NCBI GenBank assembly: GCA_002189035.1
Contig: NEEC01000050.1
Coordinates: forward strand, 1-59,519
DNA length: 59,519 nucleotides
Direction of reading: 5' to 3'
Source: Utricularia gibba
Lineage: Eukaryota > Plantae > Magnoliophyta
Shown: piece by piece, positions 38,026 to 46,310 of the stretch
Numbering within the stretch: position 1 is the first letter of the stretch
How the letters are laid out: every line of letters starts with the position of its first letter
Notes under the pieces: model-generated
What the model saw: only the letters and a program-made list of their open reading frames with translations
Database searches by the model: none
What the model was told of the DNA's origin: nothing
Position numbers and translations under genes: made by a program

Positions 38026-41000
38026 TTATTCAATGTTGATTGTCACAACCTTCTTTGCTTTTCCTCTCTGTGACTGCCCCCCACCGGAACCCTCCCTGAA
38101 AAGAGGATCCTGAAACCCACCCCATGCTGTAGGTGCTCCAAGCCGGCCACCTGCGTTCTCTGTCACCGATTGACTCACCATTGTAAATAAGAGCTTGTTT
38201 GATCGTATTACCTGACAGATTTACCTGAGTTTGTTTGAGAGCCAAAGGGGCTTGCGAAACCTGGGAAATATTTGCCGGTGCGCCCCTCCCAAGCTTGATC
38301 AAAGCCAACAAGTTCATCTGCCCACAACGAAGATGCATCTCATTATACAGTCGCTGGAAACTGATGCTTCACAAATCCATGATTCTTGGGGTTCATAGAC
38401 CAGCTGACCTTCATTTATGTTGTGAAGAGTCTGCATTGTGTCCACCTTACCACTGGAATCTAGCTTCCTGGTAACTGAATGCCCCTGTTGAAGGAGCAGT
38501 ATTACACCATTCGCTTCTTGCCTTCTTGACGTGAAACAAAAAGAAACAGAAGGAAGAAAAAGATAACATTCGTTTTGGCACCTTTTGGTGAATTCCCCTG
38601 GATATCTTATGTGTTGCTTCACCAGTTGTTCTGTTAGCCTCTCTGCTCTCCTCGAATGTCATCTGCTAAAATGTTCATGCACAGCGTTATAAATCTAATA
38701 GCACAGCTAATATGCAACAAAAAAAAAAAAAATTCAGATAAGTAGGAACATGCCCCGTCGTTCCCTGTGGTACGAGATGTTGTCGCTGTGTAATATGTTC
38801 CGTTGATACCACCATATGTCACCCTCTGGAAGCTCATGCTACGAGTCCTGGATTCCGCTACATCGACCTTGTTGTCATGCATGCTGTTTGGGGCTCTTCT
38901 GTGGTTGCTATCTTTAGCCCCAGGAACTGCCGCATCTGAAATCAGAGGAATAGTGAGGCTAATCCTGAATAGCTCAAAAACTTGTCAAGGTGCAGAGAAG
39001 GTTCAACTTACGATCTTCCTGATCATCTGGATGCTCAATAATTGGATGGCTGTCAGCAACTCCATCATTACCACCTCCATTTCCCTCGGTTCTGTCCGAA
39101 TCCTGTTCGTTATCCCCATCCATCTCTTCGATTACAGGCCCCTGCATCTTGTGCAAATGGCTATGGTTATCAGTGCGGAATATATCAGACCTGGAGGCAC
39201 GGCCAAAGGTAAAAGTATTTTTGGCTGCTTGATTTTGTTGGAGACTTGGTTGAACGTTGAGAGAATGTTGAAGTTTGTGGATATTGACTATTGTTTTTGG
39301 ATCGAAAAGAACTTTCCTTTATTTTCATAAAGCAAACAGGGATTTATATAGATGAGGAGAGTTGCCCGTTGGATCATATCAGGCCTAAAATATGACCGTT
39401 GCCTTTAGTCTGTAGATTAGTCCTCTTGTTCATCTACTGTGTAGCAGCCAGAATTTACTAGGACTTCTTTCATGGACTGGGCTTCAGATGCTTCTTCTTG
39501 GGCCAGTAGTTTGGAATGTTGAGGCCCAAGTATGATAAGGCCTTTTTCCCAATCTAATTGAGGGTTGCTTCTCATGGGAGGAACAGAGGTCGCGCGCCAT
39601 TCATCTTCGCGGGTTGAGACTTCCCGGATCTTCGTTGCTCCACCACTTGCTGACATTCCTCCCTGAGGGAGTAATGAAGATCCGGCTGTTGTCACAAGAG
39701 GATTTCTCCGAATTCCCAGCATTTCTCTGATTCTGTTGAAATTCCTTGGGAATAAGCATTTGGTGAGAATATCTGCAGGTTGCTCATCCGATGGTAAGTA
39801 CTCAAGTTTAATCAGTCCTTCCTTCACATAATCTCTGAGTATATGGTATTTAAGCTTGATGTGCTTGGTCCGACCGAACATCACAGGATTTTTTGCGATG
39901 CTAATGGCAGATTTGTTATCTATCTTGAGTATTATCGGTCTTGTAATTTGAATTTTCAGGTCATCGCATAATTTCACCAACCATTGCGCATGGTTGGCAG
40001 CAGCAGCTCCTGCGATGTATTCGGCTTCTGCCGATGATTGTGCAGTGACGGCTTGTTTCTTGCTGTTCCATGAAAATACCGCTGATCCTAAGTTGAATAG
40101 ATAGCCTGTGGTAGATTTACAATCTTGTTCGTCGCCAGCAAAGTCTGAATCAACAAATCCCTGCAAAATAGGGTTAGTACCTTTCTTGTAATATAAACCA
40201 AAGGAAGTTGTGGCCTTCAAATATTTCAGGATACGTGTTGCTATTTCCAGGTGTGTGTTGTGTGGCTGATGCATGAATCTGGCCAGAAATGATACGGCGA
40301 AGGTTATATCCGGTCTAGTAGCAGTTAAATACATCAGAGCGCCAATGAGTTTCTGGTAGTTATGAGAGTCAACTGGATGAGAATTAAGGTCAGATAATTT
40401 CTTTCTAACTTCTGGTGAGAAAGGAGTAGTAGATACTTTTGATGATTCCATGCTGTATTTTTTGAGTAGTTCCTCTGTATATCTACGTTGGTTCAAAAAT
40501 ATGAAGTCTTTATGTTGAATGATCTCCATTCCTAGGAAATAACGTGCATGTCCCAGATTGGTGAGTTCAAATCTTTGCTGCAATAGCTTCTGTAATTCAG
40601 AAATTCGTTCTTCACTGCTGCCTGTGATTAGAATGTCGTCTACGTATAAGGAGACAATAACTTTTCCTTGGATATCCTCAGATATGTATAATGTAGTATC
40701 ATTTTGACTTCTTGTATATCCCAGCTCTAGAAAGAAAGTGTCAATGGTAGTATACCATTCTTTGGGGGCCTGCTTGAGTCCGTATAAAGCTTTATTTAAT
40801 TTCAGTACATATTCTGGATTATCTCGGATGATGAAACCTGGAGGGGGTTCACATATATGTCTTCGCTTAACTCTCCATGCAGAAAGGCCGTTTTTATGTC
40901 CAGATGATGTAAATACCACTTGTTGCAGGCCGCAAGTGCAATAATCAGCTTAATGGTGTCTAATCTTGCCATCGGAGCGAAGGTTTCCAGGTAATCAATC

Positions 41001-44000
41001 CCTTCTTTCTGTAAATATCCCTTTACCACCAGTCTGGATTTTCTTTTGTTCAGAGTGCCATCAGGATTTAACTTGGGACGGAATATGAATTTTAGGTCCA
41101 GAGGTTTTTTCTGCTTCGGCTTAGGCACTGCTGTCCAAACGCCGTGTTTCTGGATGGAGTTGAATTCTTCGTCTATGGATTTCTTCCAATCTGGGTCAGC
41201 GAGAGCTTCCTGAACGCTTGCTGGTTCATAGGTGCTCAATGCCCTATCATAGATATCGTTGATTGGTGCATATCCTCGCACAGGTGAGCTGTCTTCATTT
41301 TGTTTCAGATCCATACATAGATGATGTGGGGTGTAAGGAACCCCTTCTTGTCCGTAATCTTCCAGGTAACTTTGCCTTTGAGGTGAGGGAATGAGTATAG
41401 GATTTCTTGCTGCTAGGTTGGGTCCTCGGTTTTGAGTTTCTTCATCTTCTCCTGATGAGTTTTCTTCTTCTGATGTATCGGTTGATGATAGCTCAGTGAT
41501 TTCCTTTGGATTTCTGATGCTGTTGATGAGGGTTTCATGACATTCTAGAGTTTGTTCAGGTATGTGCTCTGAGTCTGCATCCTCATATCTCATGTCTTCG
41601 ATAGTAGTGGCCATGCAACACGGTGCTTCAGTTTTAAAGCCTTGTATCTAATTCTCAATATCTATGCATATGTCTTTCAACACTGAACTTCTCGAAAGTA
41701 AAATCTCATTCAGATTTTATCTTAAGACTCGCGGGCCAGGAGTAATTCAGTTGATGAGGTCCTCCTCTTCAGGATTGTTGGGAGGAGCCTGTGGCATCGA
41801 AACCAGGAGGTATGAACACTACATCATCCCACATCGACACCGAACCATCCTTCATTCCTTGGATCATGTTCTCGAGTACATCAACCTGAATGTCTCCTTT
41901 TCTCAGTGCAGGATATGATTGTCTCTGATCACCAGCAGCTCTTAACAGAGACTTCTCTAGATCCTCCTTGCGGAAGAACACGGGCCTGTATCGCTTATCC
42001 TGAGTCCGTAATATTAACCTCTGTGACTGGAAAACCGGAACCCCACAGAAAGTGTCATCTGGAATTCCATCTTCTTGGCGTACCTTTAAGGCGTTCCTAA
42101 TCTGTGAAGCTTCGGGTAGCAACCTTAGAGCAACTCCATCAACCTTAAGCTGAAATACCTTGCATAAATCAACTGGAACAACTTGTGAGTCCAAACTCAT
42201 GGATGGATTAGAAGCCTTCATCTGATTGAGAAGTATCTCAGCATCCGCTTCACTGAAGCAAAACAATCCCAAACTTTTCCCTGTACTCTTCCCGAAACTA
42301 AAACAAATTCTCGCGCGGCATTGCTGAGAGCGAAAACCGGAATTCCGGAAAGCCTCTTCTCTATATCTTCTGCAGCCATGGTGCGTTTCTTTGTATTGAA
42401 AAAAGCATTTTCACTGGGCACAGCGTTAAGGACTTTGTTATCCTAGTACTACTCTCGCCCAAGCACGCTTAACTTCGGAGTTCTGATGGGATCCGGTGCA
42501 TTAGTGCTGGTATGATCGCACCCCTGGGAAGTCCTCGTGTTGCATCATGTCCTTGTTGAGGGAATAAATTCCATATATTTTCTGAATAAGAATGATTTTT
42601 GTCATGTGTTGTCGAGGAACTCCAGTTGTAAATTCTAGTCTCGTCTACTGTTACATCACGACTGAGTTCCACCTCATTTGTTCTTAGATTCAGTACCCTG
42701 TAGGCTTTACTTGTATTGCTATATCCCAGGAAAATTCCTTCATCAGATCTTTTGTCCCATTTTGATCTCTTCTCCTTTGGAATGTATATATAGCAGGGTG
42801 ATCCAAATACCTTCATGTGATCTAGGCTTGGAATTTTGTTGTACCATAGCTCATAAGGAGTTTTACAGTCTTTATTTCCTTTGGTTGGCAGGCGGTTCAA
42901 CAGATACACGGCTGTGTTGACTGCTTCGCCCCAGAATTCTAGAGGTAAGTGTTTTTGATAGAGTAGACACCGAGCCATATTGACTATTGTCCTGTTCTTT
43001 CGTTCACATATGCCGTTCTGCTCTGGCGTATATGGCGTTGTAAACTGGTGAGTAATACCATTTGTCTCACAAATGTGTCTCAGTTCAGTTGATTTGTACT
43101 CACCTCCGTTGTCTGACCGGAGTGTTAGAATCTTACTATTGCTTTGAGTTTCTGCAAGGACCTTGAAGACTTGGAAGTGGTGCAAAACCTCTGATTTATG
43201 CTTCAGGAGATAGATCCAGGTATACTTTGAATATTCGTCAATAAAGATCACGTAATATTTGTTGCCGGCTCGAGTAGGAGAGGCCATGGGCCCACAGACG
43301 TCACTGGTAACAACTTCCAATTTTTTCTGAGAATGAATGCTGGACTTAGGGAGTGGTGTTCGGCTCATCTTCCCTTGAAAGCATATTCTGCAGTGTTTTT
43401 CCTCAGGAATTATATTAGGAATCCCCTCTGCCAGGTTTCTCTTCTTCATGGATATAAGGGAGGCATAGTGATGGTGACCTAACCGTTGGTGCCAAATCTC
43501 AGATGATTCTAGGGACTTGAGGCAAATGTTGTAATCGATGGATGTAGCATTCGGAAGCAGTGGAAAGACCCTATCAGTCATAGCAACCGTAAGGAGTATA
43601 TTATCTTCTTCATCTAATATTTTGCACTCATTACTTTCCAGATGAACTTTCATCCCCTTTTCAACCAGCTGGCCAGTGCTTAGTAGATTGTGGTAGGCCT
43701 GGGGCACCAGATACACGTCTGTGATCTTGATTAATTTCTGGACAGTTTCAAGGCAAACTGTTCCTTGACCGATGACCTGTAAGTGATTTCCATCAGCAAT
43801 TTCGATTACTTTCCCAGTTAGCTCGATGAAGGTTGTGAATAGACTCTTGTCGTTGGTTATATGATGACTGCATCCGCTATCGATAAACCAGATGTCTTGT
43901 TTCCTTAGATCCACAAATGATGTGATTAGAGTTTTGCGGCGCAGAGAGTAAATATCAATCTTCTTCTTATTCATTTCAGCTGCGAGATTTACATCATTCA

Positions 44001-45528
44001 TAGCGCTAGTAAGTTTGTCCTTAGGATCTGCAGCCTTTCCTCCAATCTGATGGTATTTTTTCAGGGGACACACTTTGTCCACATGACCTTGGAGAGAACA
44101 GTACAGGCATTTGGCGTCAGGGCTCCAGAAACATTGTGTTGGTGAATGGCCTTTTCGCTTGCAGAATGGGCATGAATCTCCAGTACTTGGTTTCTCAATT
44201 TTTGCTTGAAAGATCACCGGTTCATTTGATGATTGAGAACCATAGCCTTTCTGATTTTCTGTTGCCTTGAAGGCAAGTTCCTGGCCTTCACCAAGTCCGA
44301 CTTCAACTTCGGATTCACTGAGTCTTTCTAGTAGTTTTCTGGAGGATATGGAGTGAATGCCTGTGACCCGCAAAGTAGTGACTACAGGGGCAAAGGACCG
44401 CGGTAGGGAACTGAGTATTTTTGATTTAATTCTTCTGTCTTCCAAGGGCTCTCCAAGGTCTGTAACTCAGTGACAATTTTGATTAGCGTTTCTGAAAAAT
44501 GAGAGATACTCATACCTGGTAAGAATTTCAGGTTGTCAAAGAGCTCCCATTGACGTTGAATGCGGCTCTCACGGGCTTCCGTATCCTCTCCGTAGAATTC
44601 CTCCAATTTTTTCCAGATGTCTTTGGGACTTTTCAGTAGCATAACACGGTTGAACACTTCTTCAGATAAGGCTTGATCCAGAGCATACTTAGCTTTCTTT
44701 ACTTGAGCATCTGTGAGTTTGAGACTTTCTGCTGTGGCTATTTCAGAGGAGTCTGGACGTACAGGATCCACCACAGACCATAAGTCGTTCATTTGCAGGT
44801 AACTTTCCATTCGTACTGCCCAAGAAGCGTAGCGCTGACCAGTGAAGATTGGAGGAGCTTGTTGGAGGGCTGCCATTCTGAGAGACTGCAATGATAAGAG
44901 GAGATGGGAGTCGGTGAAGTATCTTCACGTCGGGTTCACCATAAAAGTATTTTTGGCTGCTTGATTTTGTTGGAGACTTGGTTGAACGTTGAGAGAATGT
45001 TGAAGTTTGTGGATATTGACTATTGTTTTTGGATCGAAAAGAACTTTCCTTTATTTTCATAAAGCAAACAGGGATTTATATAGATGAGGAGAGTTGCCCG
45101 TTGGATCATATCAGGCCTAAAATATGACCGTTGCCTTTAGTCTGTAGATTAGTCCTCTTGTTCATCTACTGTGTAGCAGCCAGAATTTACTAGGACTTCT
45201 TTCATGGACTGGGCTTCAGATGCTTCTTCTTGGGCCAGTAGTTTGGAATGTTGAGGCCCAAGTATGATAAGGCCTTTTTCCCAATCTAATTGAGGGTTGC
45301 TTCTCATGGGAGGAACAGAGGTCGCGCGCCATTCATCTTCGCGGGTTGAGACTTCCCGGATCTTCGTTGCTCCACCACTTGCTGACAAAAGGGGCTGGTG
45401 AAGAAAGGGTCATCAAACGGAACCCTTCCACCAAAAGAATGCTGAAACATGCTCGTCCTGGAACCAAAATGATCAAATATGGTCCGCCCGCTCTTCGATG
45501 CATCGCCGATTTCTCTACGCCCTTGCAT
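38026..45528 (-). CDS. Myeloid leukemia factor (MLF)-like gene, interrupted in coding exon 1 by a Copia element
   Basis: Exon 1 reads MQGRRE..GGRVPFDDPFFTSPF (45528-45388) and resumes in frame after the element as GRASRSD..GPVIEEMD. Later exons: SFQRVTYGGINGTYYTAT, TFEESREA..HKISRGIH, GHSVTRKLDSSGKVDTMQTLHN, ending KVVTINIE*. Confidence 0.85.
39210..39655 (-). repeat. 3' LTR
   Basis: Direct repeat of 44942-45387 with no mismatch found by eye. Starts TGTCA and ends TTTTA on the minus strand. TATA-like TATATAAAT at 39350-39342. Confidence 0.96.
39417..41644 (-). CDS. Copia reverse transcriptase and RNase H (frameshift near 40850; ORF runs into the 3' LTR)
   Basis: EPASVQEAL, KSRLVVKGYLQKEGIDY, LDIKTAFLHG, LYGLKQAPKEW, SLYVDDILITG, FVDSDFAGD, SSAEAEY, IDNKSAI, ADILTK. 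Confidence 0.93.
39656..39664 (-). other. Polypurine tract
   Basis: AGGGAGGAA immediately upstream of the 3' LTR TG. Confidence 0.8.
41769..42379 (-). CDS. Intronless TIC22-like (plastid intermembrane-space import chaperone) copy captured inside the Copia element, lacking the transit peptide
   Basis: MAAEDIEKRLSGIPVFALSN..EFVLVSG, LGLFCFSEADAE, KVFQLKVDGVALRLLPE, GVPVFQS..LILR, YRPVFFRKEDLEKSL, GDIQV, WDDVVFIPPGFD. These match plant TIC22-like (TIC22-III type) proteins from memory. One base in the run at 42291-42293 joins the two ORFs into about 203 aa. Confidence 0.88.
42440..42546 (-). pseudogene. Rearranged 5S rRNA-derived sequence: nt 1-84 on minus (42523-42440) plus nt 94-117 on plus (42523-42546)
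   Basis: Minus strand GGGTGCGATCATACCAGCACTAATGCACCGGATCCCATCAGAACTCCGAAGTTAAGCGTGCTTGGGCGAGAGTAGTACTAGGAT and plus strand CCTGGGAAGTCCTCGTGTTGCATC both match the angiosperm 5S rRNA consensus as recalled. Confidence 0.95.
42469..44876 (-). CDS. Copia gag (UBN2-type, two CCHC knuckles), protease, GAG-pre-integrase and integrase (frameshift at 44446-44448)
   Basis: PPIFTGQRYASWAVRM, CPFCKRKGHSPTQC and CLYCSLQGHVDKVC, WFIDSGCSHH, WHQRLGH, SDVCGP..SDNGGEY..PEQNGICERKNRT, GIFLGY, SRDVTVDE. Confidence 0.93.
44924..44941 (-). other. Primer-binding site complementary to cytosolic tRNA-Trp
   Basis: Minus strand TGGTGAACCCGACGTGAA directly abuts the 5' LTR. The + strand TTCACGTCGGGTTCACCA equals the recalled 3' end of plant tRNA-Trp(CCA) plus CCA. 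Confidence 0.85.
44942..45387 (-). repeat. 5' LTR
   Basis: Direct repeat of 39210-39655, followed by the PBS. TATA-like motif at 45082-45074. Confidence 0.96.
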
Positions 45529-46310
45529 TTCTACTGTGCCTCCCATCAAACAACAGAACAATCCATGAATAAGCTTACCGATAACACAACAGACAAAACG
45601 GCACTTTCCATACACAAATGGGAACTGCGAGCTATTAAAACAACGAAACGCATTTATGACCAACAATTGACCGAGATCAACTCCTTCCAACGAAATTCGT
45701 GAAGCCAGAACATAGGCAAACGCCTTTCAACCCCCCAAAAAAACAAGCAATTGAGGCTTCAACCTAAACGAATGGAATAAAACTATTACATCAAGCAATT
45801 CTTGCAGTAAGAACCTGAAACCCCGGCAATCAAGCAATTGATCCAGGCCTTCCCTCACCCTTCCGCGCTCCAGAATCTGTGATTCAAAGCTTTTCTATTT
45901 ACTTCACGTAGGAGGATAAATATCAGGCTTACACGTGTCATCGCTACACCGTTTGTTATTTTAATCAATGGTGCTGGATCCTTCCAGTGTCTTCTTCCCT
46001 TCTCTCGCTTGCGGGAAGAATTAGCAATCGCCGGTTGGAAGGATGCCTTGGCCGGTTCGGCTACTGAAAATTGGCCGGTTTATTACAATTTTGAACGAAA
46101 TTTCAAATAAATACATAAGTTTTAGTTTTTTTTAAAAAAAATAGCATTGAATCCAACCCGGCGCCATGGTCCATGTCTCAATCTCAGAACCGACGGTCCG
46201 GTAGGAAGAAATTGTTTTATATATAATTTGGTGTAAGAGTTGGAAAAACCGCTGTGACGGAGTGTCTCAATTTCGAGCGAGAGATTCAGCCTCTGAACTT
46301 TTGGGAAGAA

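Follow-up and report, generated by a model that had tools for sequence, protein, structure and literature searches.

A split and inverted 5S rRNA inside a plant Ty1/copia retrotransposon as a probable scar of reverse-transcriptase template switching

In LINE-1 twin priming, the other chromosomal DNA end provides a second 3'-OH from which synthesis starts in the opposite direction; the two products, once joined via microhomology, give an inversion. Twin priming is also the explanation given for primate 5S/LINE-1 chimeras, which start at 5S nt 1, break off at loop C (46) or loop D (90) and are often antisense (bioRxiv 10.1101/2025.02.02.635956, where the earlier 5S/LINE-1 work of Buzdin et al. 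is cited). The capture of host sequences via abnormal template switching is established in LTR retrotransposons (PMC13317346; PMC1950507), plant transduction cases being maize Bs1, Veju and BARE-2 (PMC13317346; Sabot and Schulman, PMC1950507), and the packaging of 5S rRNA has been described in retroviral particles (PMC2175372). The RNAs captured in the reported plant cases were mRNAs or other retrotransposon RNAs (PMC13317346; PMC1950507). A different association of 5S sequence with LTR elements is found in Cassandra TRIMs. Each of their LTRs contains a full 5S-like unit (box A, box C and terminator); they use an initiator-Met primer binding site (PBS), TGGTATCAGAGC, and have no coding domain (PMC7215508, citing Kalendar et al. 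2008).

The 5S-derived sequence analysed here lies in a window of 59,519 nt (the whole stretch of DNA examined; Table 1). As in the primate chimeras, the 5S fragment has nt 1 at a junction and breaks off at loop D (about nt 90 there, nt 84 here), its orientation is opposite to that of its partner, and RT template switching or twin priming on a small structured RNA is invoked. The primate chimeras, however, are products of LINE-1 ORF2p at a chromosomal target, with poly(A), 7-15-bp target site duplications (TSDs) and an endonuclease site, whereas here both 5S halves are present, in opposite orientations, inside an LTR retrotransposon and with an mRNA copy attached; neither poly(A) nor LINE sequence was found at the 5S junctions, which are flanked by copia integrase and Tic22 cDNA. 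An inversion via a second 3'-OH with joining by microhomology would likewise recall LINE-1 twin priming, but the proposed second primer would here be the 3' part of 5S within the particle. The locus resembles plant gene capture in that a co-packaged host RNA appears to have been copied into the internal domain of a non-autonomous element with normal LTRs and TSD; among the reported cases (PMC13317346; PMC1950507) none shows a small Pol III RNA divided at a hairpin tip and inserted in both orientations bordering a captured mRNA. With Cassandra it shares the presence of 5S-derived sequence in a plant LTR retrotransposon. Unlike in Cassandra, this sequence is internal (the only RF00001 match is at 42415-42523), incomplete, rearranged and cut within box C, the PBS reads TGGTGAACCCGACGTGAA, beginning TGGTGAACCC, and gag, INT and RT domains are present, in agreement with the original prediction that the element is not Cassandra-like.

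Table 1. Coordinates of the 5S pieces, the host copia element and its cargo in the window
Feature	Position	Strand	Remarks and basis
5' LTR, 446 bp	44942..45387	-	446/446 identical to 3' LTR; self-BLAST
3' LTR, 446 bp	39210..39655	-	self-BLAST
TSD AAAGG, 5 bp	45388-45392 and 39205-39209		sequence reading
PBS	44924-44941		adjoins 5' LTR; sequence reading
Polypurine tract (PPT)	39656-39664		adjoins 3' LTR; sequence reading
copia gag ORF	44382..44891	-	Pfam Retrotran_gag_2, DUF4219; out of frame with pol
copia protease-integrase ORF	42469..44445	-	ORF list; Pfam Pol_BBD, gag_pre-integrs, rve, SH3_retrovirus
Piece B, 5S nt 94-117	42523..42546	+	antisense to element; 24/24 identical to plant 5S
Piece A, 5S nt 1-84	42440..42523	-	sense to element; RF00001, gap-free alignment
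Tic22-like cDNA fragment	41623..42439	-	sense to element; Pfam PF04278, E 4e-56 and 1.6e-8
Candidate piece c, 10-mer CGTGTTGCAT	41613..41622	-	identical to 5S nt 107-116; exact-match scan
copia INT-RT linker, RT and downstream part	39417..41614	-	ORF list; Pfam RVT_2

The predicted architecture, 5S nt 1-84 joined to antisense nt 94-117, was confirmed, for piece A by RF00001 and for both pieces by alignment to plant 5S genes taken from 5S rDNA arrays on metagenome contigs (L001-L004) that belong to foreign plants and not to the source species. Against these genes piece A shows no gaps and up to 81 identical positions out of 84, and it comprises the 5' strand of helix I, the helix II/III arm, box A (nt 50-61) and the first 5 nt of box C. 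The 24-mer of piece B is found at one place in the window when as many as three mismatches are tolerated (0 expected), and no sequence decay is seen in either piece. The two overlap by a single base, 42523, within the C run 42521-42524 in which they had been proposed to meet, and comparison with the plant genes bears out the absence of nt 85-93 (GGGTGACCT) between them. Piece A starts at nt 1 (or 2) of 5S and piece B reaches nt 117, which in an RNA of about 119-120 nt is 2-3 nt short of the mature 3' end, with neither terminator nor spacer following. Along the sense strand of the element the order is integrase, antisense 5S (117 to 94), sense 5S (1 to 84), Tic22-like cDNA, the 10-mer, and the INT-RT linker with RT.

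Covariance-model support, suggested for both strands, was obtained for one. In the Rfam/Infernal search of the window the minus strand (42523..42415) matched RF00001 at 69.6 bits, the gathering score being 38; intact plant 5S genes on the metagenome contigs reach 100-111 bits with the same model. On the plus strand piece B gave no match because its 24 nt are too short for Infernal. The Rfam alignment would describe 42415-42523 as a single full-length sense 5S lacking 10 nt. This candidate was rejected: positions 42415-42439 belong to the Tic22 frame and align to the N-terminal region of Tic22-like proteins, and the 3' part of the alignment, being Tic22 coding sequence, contains many non-standard pairs. 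A complete, uniformly oriented 5S in which helices I, IV and V are closed is thus not present, nt 85-93 being missing and nt 94-117 lying on the other strand. The 28-mer spanning the A|B junction had 0 matches in the metagenome contigs.

The host of the 5S pieces is a young plant Ty1/copia element on the minus strand, with direct LTRs, a 5-bp TSD, a PBS, a PPT and the Pfam domain order gag - protease - integrase - RT. The pieces are placed after integrase and before RT, immediately upstream of the Tic22-like cDNA. As had been predicted, the integrase frame ends at a TAA within box A: its last 25 codons derive from the 5S pieces, and the stop codon (42469-42471) corresponds to 5S nt 53-55. The RT region consists of two overlapping ORFs in different frames (40802-41614 and 39417-40919), which indicates a frameshift inside RT, and the RVT_2 match is split at profile position ~98-100. 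With integrase stopping in 5S, RT cut off and frameshifts in gag/pol and RT, this copy must have moved in trans; the older frameshifts imply a history before its last move. The LTR retrotransposon passed through reverse transcription as a unit. The best protein in a search for close relatives was 50% identical and covered the RT part only, and no copia relatives were found in viral contigs; together with the search for the A|B junction, these comparisons gave neither a cargo-free relative nor a second cargo-bearing or intermediate copy. Pfam gave no matches for the ORFs flanking the insertion.

The cargo adjoining piece A is a 5'-truncated Tic22-like fragment that starts near codon 58 of 266-290 aa proteins, is 71-74% identical to TIC22-like proteins of Lamiales, carries a 1-nt deletion frameshift near 42290 and continues beyond its stop codon (41769-41771) into ~146 nt of 3'-UTR-like sequence. 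Over ~210 residues aligned to plant proteins there is no intron-sized gap; as in gene capture, an intron-free host sequence is enclosed by element sequences within the internal domain. The introns lost from the parent Tic22 gene we infer only from gene models of Arabidopsis, whose diagrams show them (PMC3652856), and from 'isoform' names. On either side of the cargo stand CATG and the arms of a 10-nt inverted repeat. A native site of the form 'L-CATG-R', of which 4 bp would have been duplicated at the cargo, is neither favoured nor disfavoured; it would set integrase and RT out of frame, and the element has other frameshifts. A 9-nt inverted repeat (41624-41632 / 42252-42260) was dismissed as chance, about three being expected in 1.2 kb.

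In both the predicted fold and the Rfam structure line the inner 5S break points, nt 84 and 94, lie on opposite sides of the tip of helix IV/loop D, where G82 pairs with C94 and A83 with U93; the missing nt 85-93 make up the mini-hairpin GG-GUGA-CC and U93. Break points at the RNA ends and at this tip indicate an RNA-templated origin. An RT-mediated origin in general is quite likely, and the split 5S is probably the scar of non-homologous RT template switching in a copia virus-like particle. Of the two routes named in the original prediction, RT fold-back and strand-switch, a strand switch on structured 5S RNA fits best, because the pieces are bounded by RNA ends and hairpin tip, adjoin an intron-free cDNA and lie in an LTR retrotransposon. 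A simple snap-back of nascent cDNA can be discarded: nt 94-117 (piece B) lie outside nt 1-84 (piece A) and were thus not there for the nascent cDNA to copy from itself.

Under template switching, minus-strand cDNA synthesis would have come off the copia RNA within the INT-RT linker and continued on a co-packaged Tic22-like mRNA, copied from inside the 3' UTR to about codon 58. It would then have jumped to 5S rRNA at nt 84, beside the loop D hairpin tip, where a GAT codon may be common to both templates (0-3 nt of microhomology), and run off the 5' end of 5S at nt 1. The return to copia would have involved the other side of the same hairpin, nt 94-117, which may either have primed a minus-strand restart on integrase or have served the plus strand as a template from its 3' end onwards. 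The run-off 3' ends (...CCCAGG and ...GCACCC) could finally have annealed by a 1-2-nt G/C overlap and been extended on each other, much as in normal second strand transfer. The whole route costs four or five non-homologous switches, and the integrase|B junction has no clear microhomology. Use of the 3' part of 5S as a primer, or its copying from the 3' end, is a tentative proposal. Trimming or an internal start would be needed, since piece B stops short of the mature 3' end; the extension from the 5S 3' end that had been proposed agrees with the orientation, nt 94-117 being followed on the plus strand directly by antisense integrase.

Part of the structure may alternatively have accumulated stepwise over several retrotransposition cycles, a history that we regard as rather unlikely, although it survives better than the other alternatives. 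A near-full sense 5S (nt 1 to ~116) would have been captured first in the INT-RT linker and acted as an RT pause site; Tic22 would later have replaced nt 85-106, and antisense nt 94-117 would have been added. The sense strand, with 5S 1-84, Tic22 and the 10-mer (107-116), does resemble one 5S interrupted by Tic22, and the frameshifts in the Tic22 part and the element, set against identical LTRs, mean that at least part of the structure is older than the last cycle. Pieces A and B, however, show no decay, and the 10-mer itself may be chance or native copia sequence. This candidate third piece, sense to the element at the junction of the cargo with the INT-RT linker, forms an inverted repeat, without mismatches, with part of piece B, and together with its flanks the region matches 5S nt 99-116 at 15 of 18 positions; chance 10-mer matches number ~11 per 59.5 kb (p ~0.03 for the cargo-end zone). 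It is possibly 5S-derived, possibly native and possibly fortuitous. As a source of piece B through self-copying of nascent cDNA it was rejected, its flank reading GAAG-CAC where 5S has GAAGTCCT.

Repair at the DNA level appears improbable. In this scenario a double-strand break in a genomic or extrachromosomal copia copy would have undergone synthesis-dependent or microhomology-mediated repair, with short stretches of filler copied from 5S rDNA, both of its strands serving as template, and from a Tic22 retrocopy, and the product would later have been retrotransposed. Duplex rDNA readily supplies both 5S orientations, the tiny junction overlaps (1 nt at A|B) resemble those of filler-DNA repair, and the 10-nt inverted repeat and CATG on both sides of the cargo, as well as the older defects and hence pre-history of the element, would fit. 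Yet nothing about rDNA as a template would make copying stop at transcript position +1 and at nt 117, no 5S spacer is present, two of the breaks are adjacent only in folded RNA, and the accompanying Tic22 piece is a spliced-type cDNA in sense orientation.

A functional 5S, whether as a Pol III module like that of Cassandra or as bait for 5S siRNAs or for pairing with 5S rRNA, is very improbable. By the plant consensus (PMC7215508) box A occupies nt 50-61 and box C nt 80-92, so that the prediction of a retained box A and a cut box C stands, with these limits in place of about +51-62 and +81-90. Box A followed by N18 and RRRAT, the first 5 nt of box C, has one match in the window (42440-42474), and the full boxA-N18-boxC pattern has none; only 5 of the 13 nt of box C precede the cut, which leaves no Pol III promoter. 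The intact box A and helix II/III arm, the latter predicted to fold within the element RNA, a T6 run (42399-42404) ~36-41 nt downstream of nt 84, and the 24 nt of perfect antisense to 5S rRNA in piece B could be read in favour of function. Against this stand the absence of upstream 5S elements, a single known copy, a position that breaks the element's own polyprotein and no sign of conservation. The split and inverted 5S is neither a gene nor a promoter nor a module of the Cassandra type, and its pieces are predicted, from sequence, to be without function for plant or element; nothing in the sequence calls for the siRNA exposure or 5S rRNA pairing that had been suggested. An assembly or sequencing artefact at 42523 (a chimeric read or misjoin) is hardly credible, since the inverted junctions with 1-2-nt overlaps typical of amplification chimeras would here have to lie inside a coherent element with perfect LTRs, a TSD and continuous ORFs on both sides, around an inverted piece of only 24 nt that passes into seamless in-frame integrase sequence.

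Host-sequence capture by LTR retrotransposons is known, but the underlying switches are rarely readable base by base. Here the break points can be placed on an RNA of known structure, at nt 1, at nt 84|94 across one hairpin tip and at nt 117, so that the locus preserves, as a natural record, the points at which a plant copia RT entered and left a structured Pol III RNA. It also carries a warning for annotation, as Infernal reports the split 5S as one full-length match on a single strand. The coincidence at loop D with a truncation class of the primate 5S/LINE-1 chimeras hints at a common rule. It is tempting, if doubtful, to suppose that in copia particles a 5S rRNA opened or broken at loop D served both as template (nt 1-84) and as primer or 3'-end acceptor (nt 94-117). 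Were this so, LTR elements would possess a route resembling twin priming, in which 5S forms the hinge that lets RT leave and regain its own genome, picking up an mRNA on the way, and the break at loop D would be a general property of 5S, a hot spot of cleavage or of RT entry shared across very different reverse transcriptases.

The split and inverted 5S rRNA structure at 42440-42546 is real and well beyond chance. RF00001 (5S rRNA) is the sole Rfam family above threshold in the 59.5-kb window; its match, on the minus strand at 42523..42415, scores 69.6 bits (gathering score 38). A search pattern derived solely from the window picked out four loci with plant 5S rDNA arrays among metagenome contigs; their genes, which score 70-111 bits, served as references. 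Piece A (42523..42440, minus strand, sense to the element) corresponds gap-free to 5S nt 1-84, with at most 81 of 84 positions identical to foreign plant copies. Piece B (42523..42546, plus strand, antisense to the element) corresponds to nt 94-117 and is identical to the fetched plant 5S genes at 24/24 positions; its 24-mer occurs once in the window even at 3 mismatches, with 0 such occurrences expected. Base 42523 belongs to both pieces, and neither contains nt 85-93 (GGGTGACCT). Alignment to plant 5S genes and the Rfam match thus bear out the split, inverted arrangement of the original prediction; the suggested Infernal search of both strands recovers the minus-strand match, whereas piece B is invisible to it. 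The Infernal alignment runs on over 42415-42439 with many non-standard pairs; this stretch was rejected as 5S, as the Tic22-like reading frame continues there and aligns to the Tic22-like N-terminal region. The 28-mer spanning the A/B junction has no match in the metagenome contigs. Two of the reference contigs, Ga0209489_109507 and Ga0209700_110341, come from environmental metagenome assemblies and contain long arrays of plant 5S rDNA built on a ~290-bp unit, in which many gene copies are partly decayed (70-107 bits); the series of 5S copies is the same in both.

The host is a complete, very recently integrated Ty1/copia element of 6178 bp, and the foreign cargo sits in its integrase-RT linker, the Pfam domain order on the minus strand being gag, protease/integrase, Tic22 and RVT_2.

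Features of the copia element and its cargo
Feature	Coordinates	Strand	Basis or position
LTRs, two direct repeats, 446 bp, 100% identical	39210-39655 and 44942-45387		self-comparison
Target site duplication AAAGG	39205-39209 and 45388-45392		borders both LTRs
Primer-binding site	44924-44941	minus	after 5' LTR
Purine tract	39656-39664	minus	before 3' LTR
gag	44382-44891	minus	Pfam
Protease/integrase	42469-44445	minus	Pfam
Tic22 (PF04278)	42218-42421 and 41769-42272	minus	Pfam
RVT_2	40802-41614 and 39417-40919	minus	Pfam

Despite the identical LTRs, gag is not in frame with pol (overlap 44382-44445) and RT carries an internal frameshift (ORF overlap 40802-40919), so this copy must have been mobilised by proteins supplied in trans, and part of its history is older than its last move. 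The primer-binding site reads TGGTGAACCCGACGTGAA, unlike the usual copia initiator-Met site TGGTATCAGAGC, and the window holds no tRNA genes for comparison. The insertion lies in a region with minus-strand ORFs, e.g. 45304-45690, and four flanking ORFs searched against Pfam gave no match. Relatives of this copia closer than 50% were absent from the protein database, and viral contigs gave no match.

On the element sense strand (window minus), the integrase sequence ...GGACAT is followed by antisense 5S nt 117 to 94, sense 5S nt 1 to 84, the Tic22-like coding part, CGTGTTGCAT (41622..41613) and then GGCCACT... of the open linker/RT frame. The integrase ORF continues for 25 codons through the 5S pieces to a stop, TAA, formed by 5S nt 53-55. 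The Tic22-like part begins at about codon 58 of 266-290-aa proteins, has no intron-sized interruption and ends at a stop at 41769-41771, followed by ~146 nt of 3'-UTR-like sequence. A single nucleotide deleted from a G/A run near 42290 (42286-42295) shifts its frame, and the remaining core (~170 aa) is open, with best matches among Lamiales proteins at 71-74% identity, in keeping with Utricularia gibba as the source. Because 5S nt 82-84 supply a GAT codon aligned to a conserved E/D in the Tic22 N-terminal region, 0-3 nt may be common to piece A and Tic22 at their junction.

The break points acquire meaning on the folded RNA. Together with the nine missing bases, pieces A and B are predicted to form the canonical three-armed 5S fold, which is also what the Rfam structure line shows for an intact plant gene. 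Piece A starts at the mature RNA's 5' end, nt 1 (or nt 2 if the shared base is assigned to piece B), and piece B ends at nt 117, 2-3 nt short of the 3' end. The missing nt 85-93 comprise the terminal G85-C92/G86-C91 mini-stem, its GUGA loop (loop D) and U93, while nt 84 and nt 94 lie opposite each other on helix IV (pairs A83-U93 and G82-C94). Mapped in this way, every end of piece A and piece B is either a physical end of the RNA or one of two neighbours at a single hairpin tip, boundaries none of which copying of duplex rDNA would explain.

The best reading is that reverse transcriptase switched templates in the course of gene capture and left the structure as a functionless by-product. For plant LTR retrotransposons, abnormal template switching is accepted as the way in which such capture occurs (PMC13317346; PMC1950507), and 5S rRNA has been found in retroviral particles (PMC2175372). 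Of the two routes originally proposed on 5S RNA, a strand switch fits ends that coincide with RNA ends and a hairpin tip, whereas simple fold-back of nascent cDNA is excluded, because piece B is not contained in piece A. Minus-strand copying of nt 84 to 1 would yield a sense piece A joined directly to the Tic22 cDNA, and plus-strand copying of nt 117 to 94 would yield piece B antisense and contiguous with integrase. On the window plus strand, antisense integrase directly follows 5S nt 94-117, the layout that a primer extended from its 3'-OH would leave. In the favoured route, minus-strand synthesis would quit the copia RNA in the linker, copy Tic22 mRNA from a point inside its 3' UTR, jump onto 5S next to loop D, at nt 84, and run off at nt 1. 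The segment nt 94-117, released either when reverse transcriptase unwinds the RNA and RNase H degrades what has been copied or by an earlier cut in loop D, could then prime renewed synthesis on the integrase region, or itself serve as template for the plus strand, which would copy it from its 3' end. Finally, the two run-off 3' ends may have annealed through terminal G/C, each being extended on the other.

A possible third piece lies at the cargo's other end, where CGTGTTGCAT (41613-41622) is identical to sense 5S nt 107-116. Extended into its flank, the match covers nt 99-116 at 15 of 18 positions; like piece B, the 10-mer stops at the 5S 3' terminus (nt 116 versus 117) with copia sequence next. 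It may be a short stretch copied as the cDNA first reached the 5S 3' end, or it may be native to the copia and have provided homology to 5S. Chance could also account for it, with ~11 chance 10-mers matching 5S per 59.5 kb, or p ~0.03 for the 155-nt junction zone. If the 10-mer is real, the sense strand would represent one 5S copy (1-84 ... 107-116) with Tic22 replacing nt 85-106, which would favour either two visits to the same 5S molecule or an origin in steps. The whole cargo is bracketed by the 10-nt perfect inverted repeat ATGCAACACG / CGTGTTGCAT (42536-42545 and 41613-41622), both arms of which are 5S 3' end region, one within piece B; the arms could pair in the element RNA and draw the integrase and RT flanks together.

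The plant Pol III consensus consists of box A RGTTAAGYRHGY, 18 nt and box C RRRATRGGTRACY (PMC7215508), which places box A at 5S nt 50-61 and box C at nt 80-92. This full pattern is absent from the whole window, and 42440-42474 retains box A and the spacer, with box C reaching only to its fifth nt. A T6 run at 42399-42404 (minus strand), ~36-41 nt downstream of 5S nt 84 and inside the Tic22 coding part, resembles a Pol III terminator, most likely by coincidence; in the absence of box C, nothing at this locus would support TFIIIA-dependent transcription. Nor is the locus Cassandra-like, since its 5S sequence is outside the LTRs, coding domains are present and the primer-binding site differs.

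The most interesting parallel is with primate 5S/LINE-1 chimeras, in which 5S starts at nt 1, is truncated at 46 or 90 ('Loop C and D') and is often antisense, twin priming having been proposed (bioRxiv 10.1101/2025.02.02.635956). A break point at loop D is common to these chimeras and the copia 5S pieces. The interest of the locus thus lies in break points that map cleanly on 5S RNA structure and echo the LINE-1 cases.
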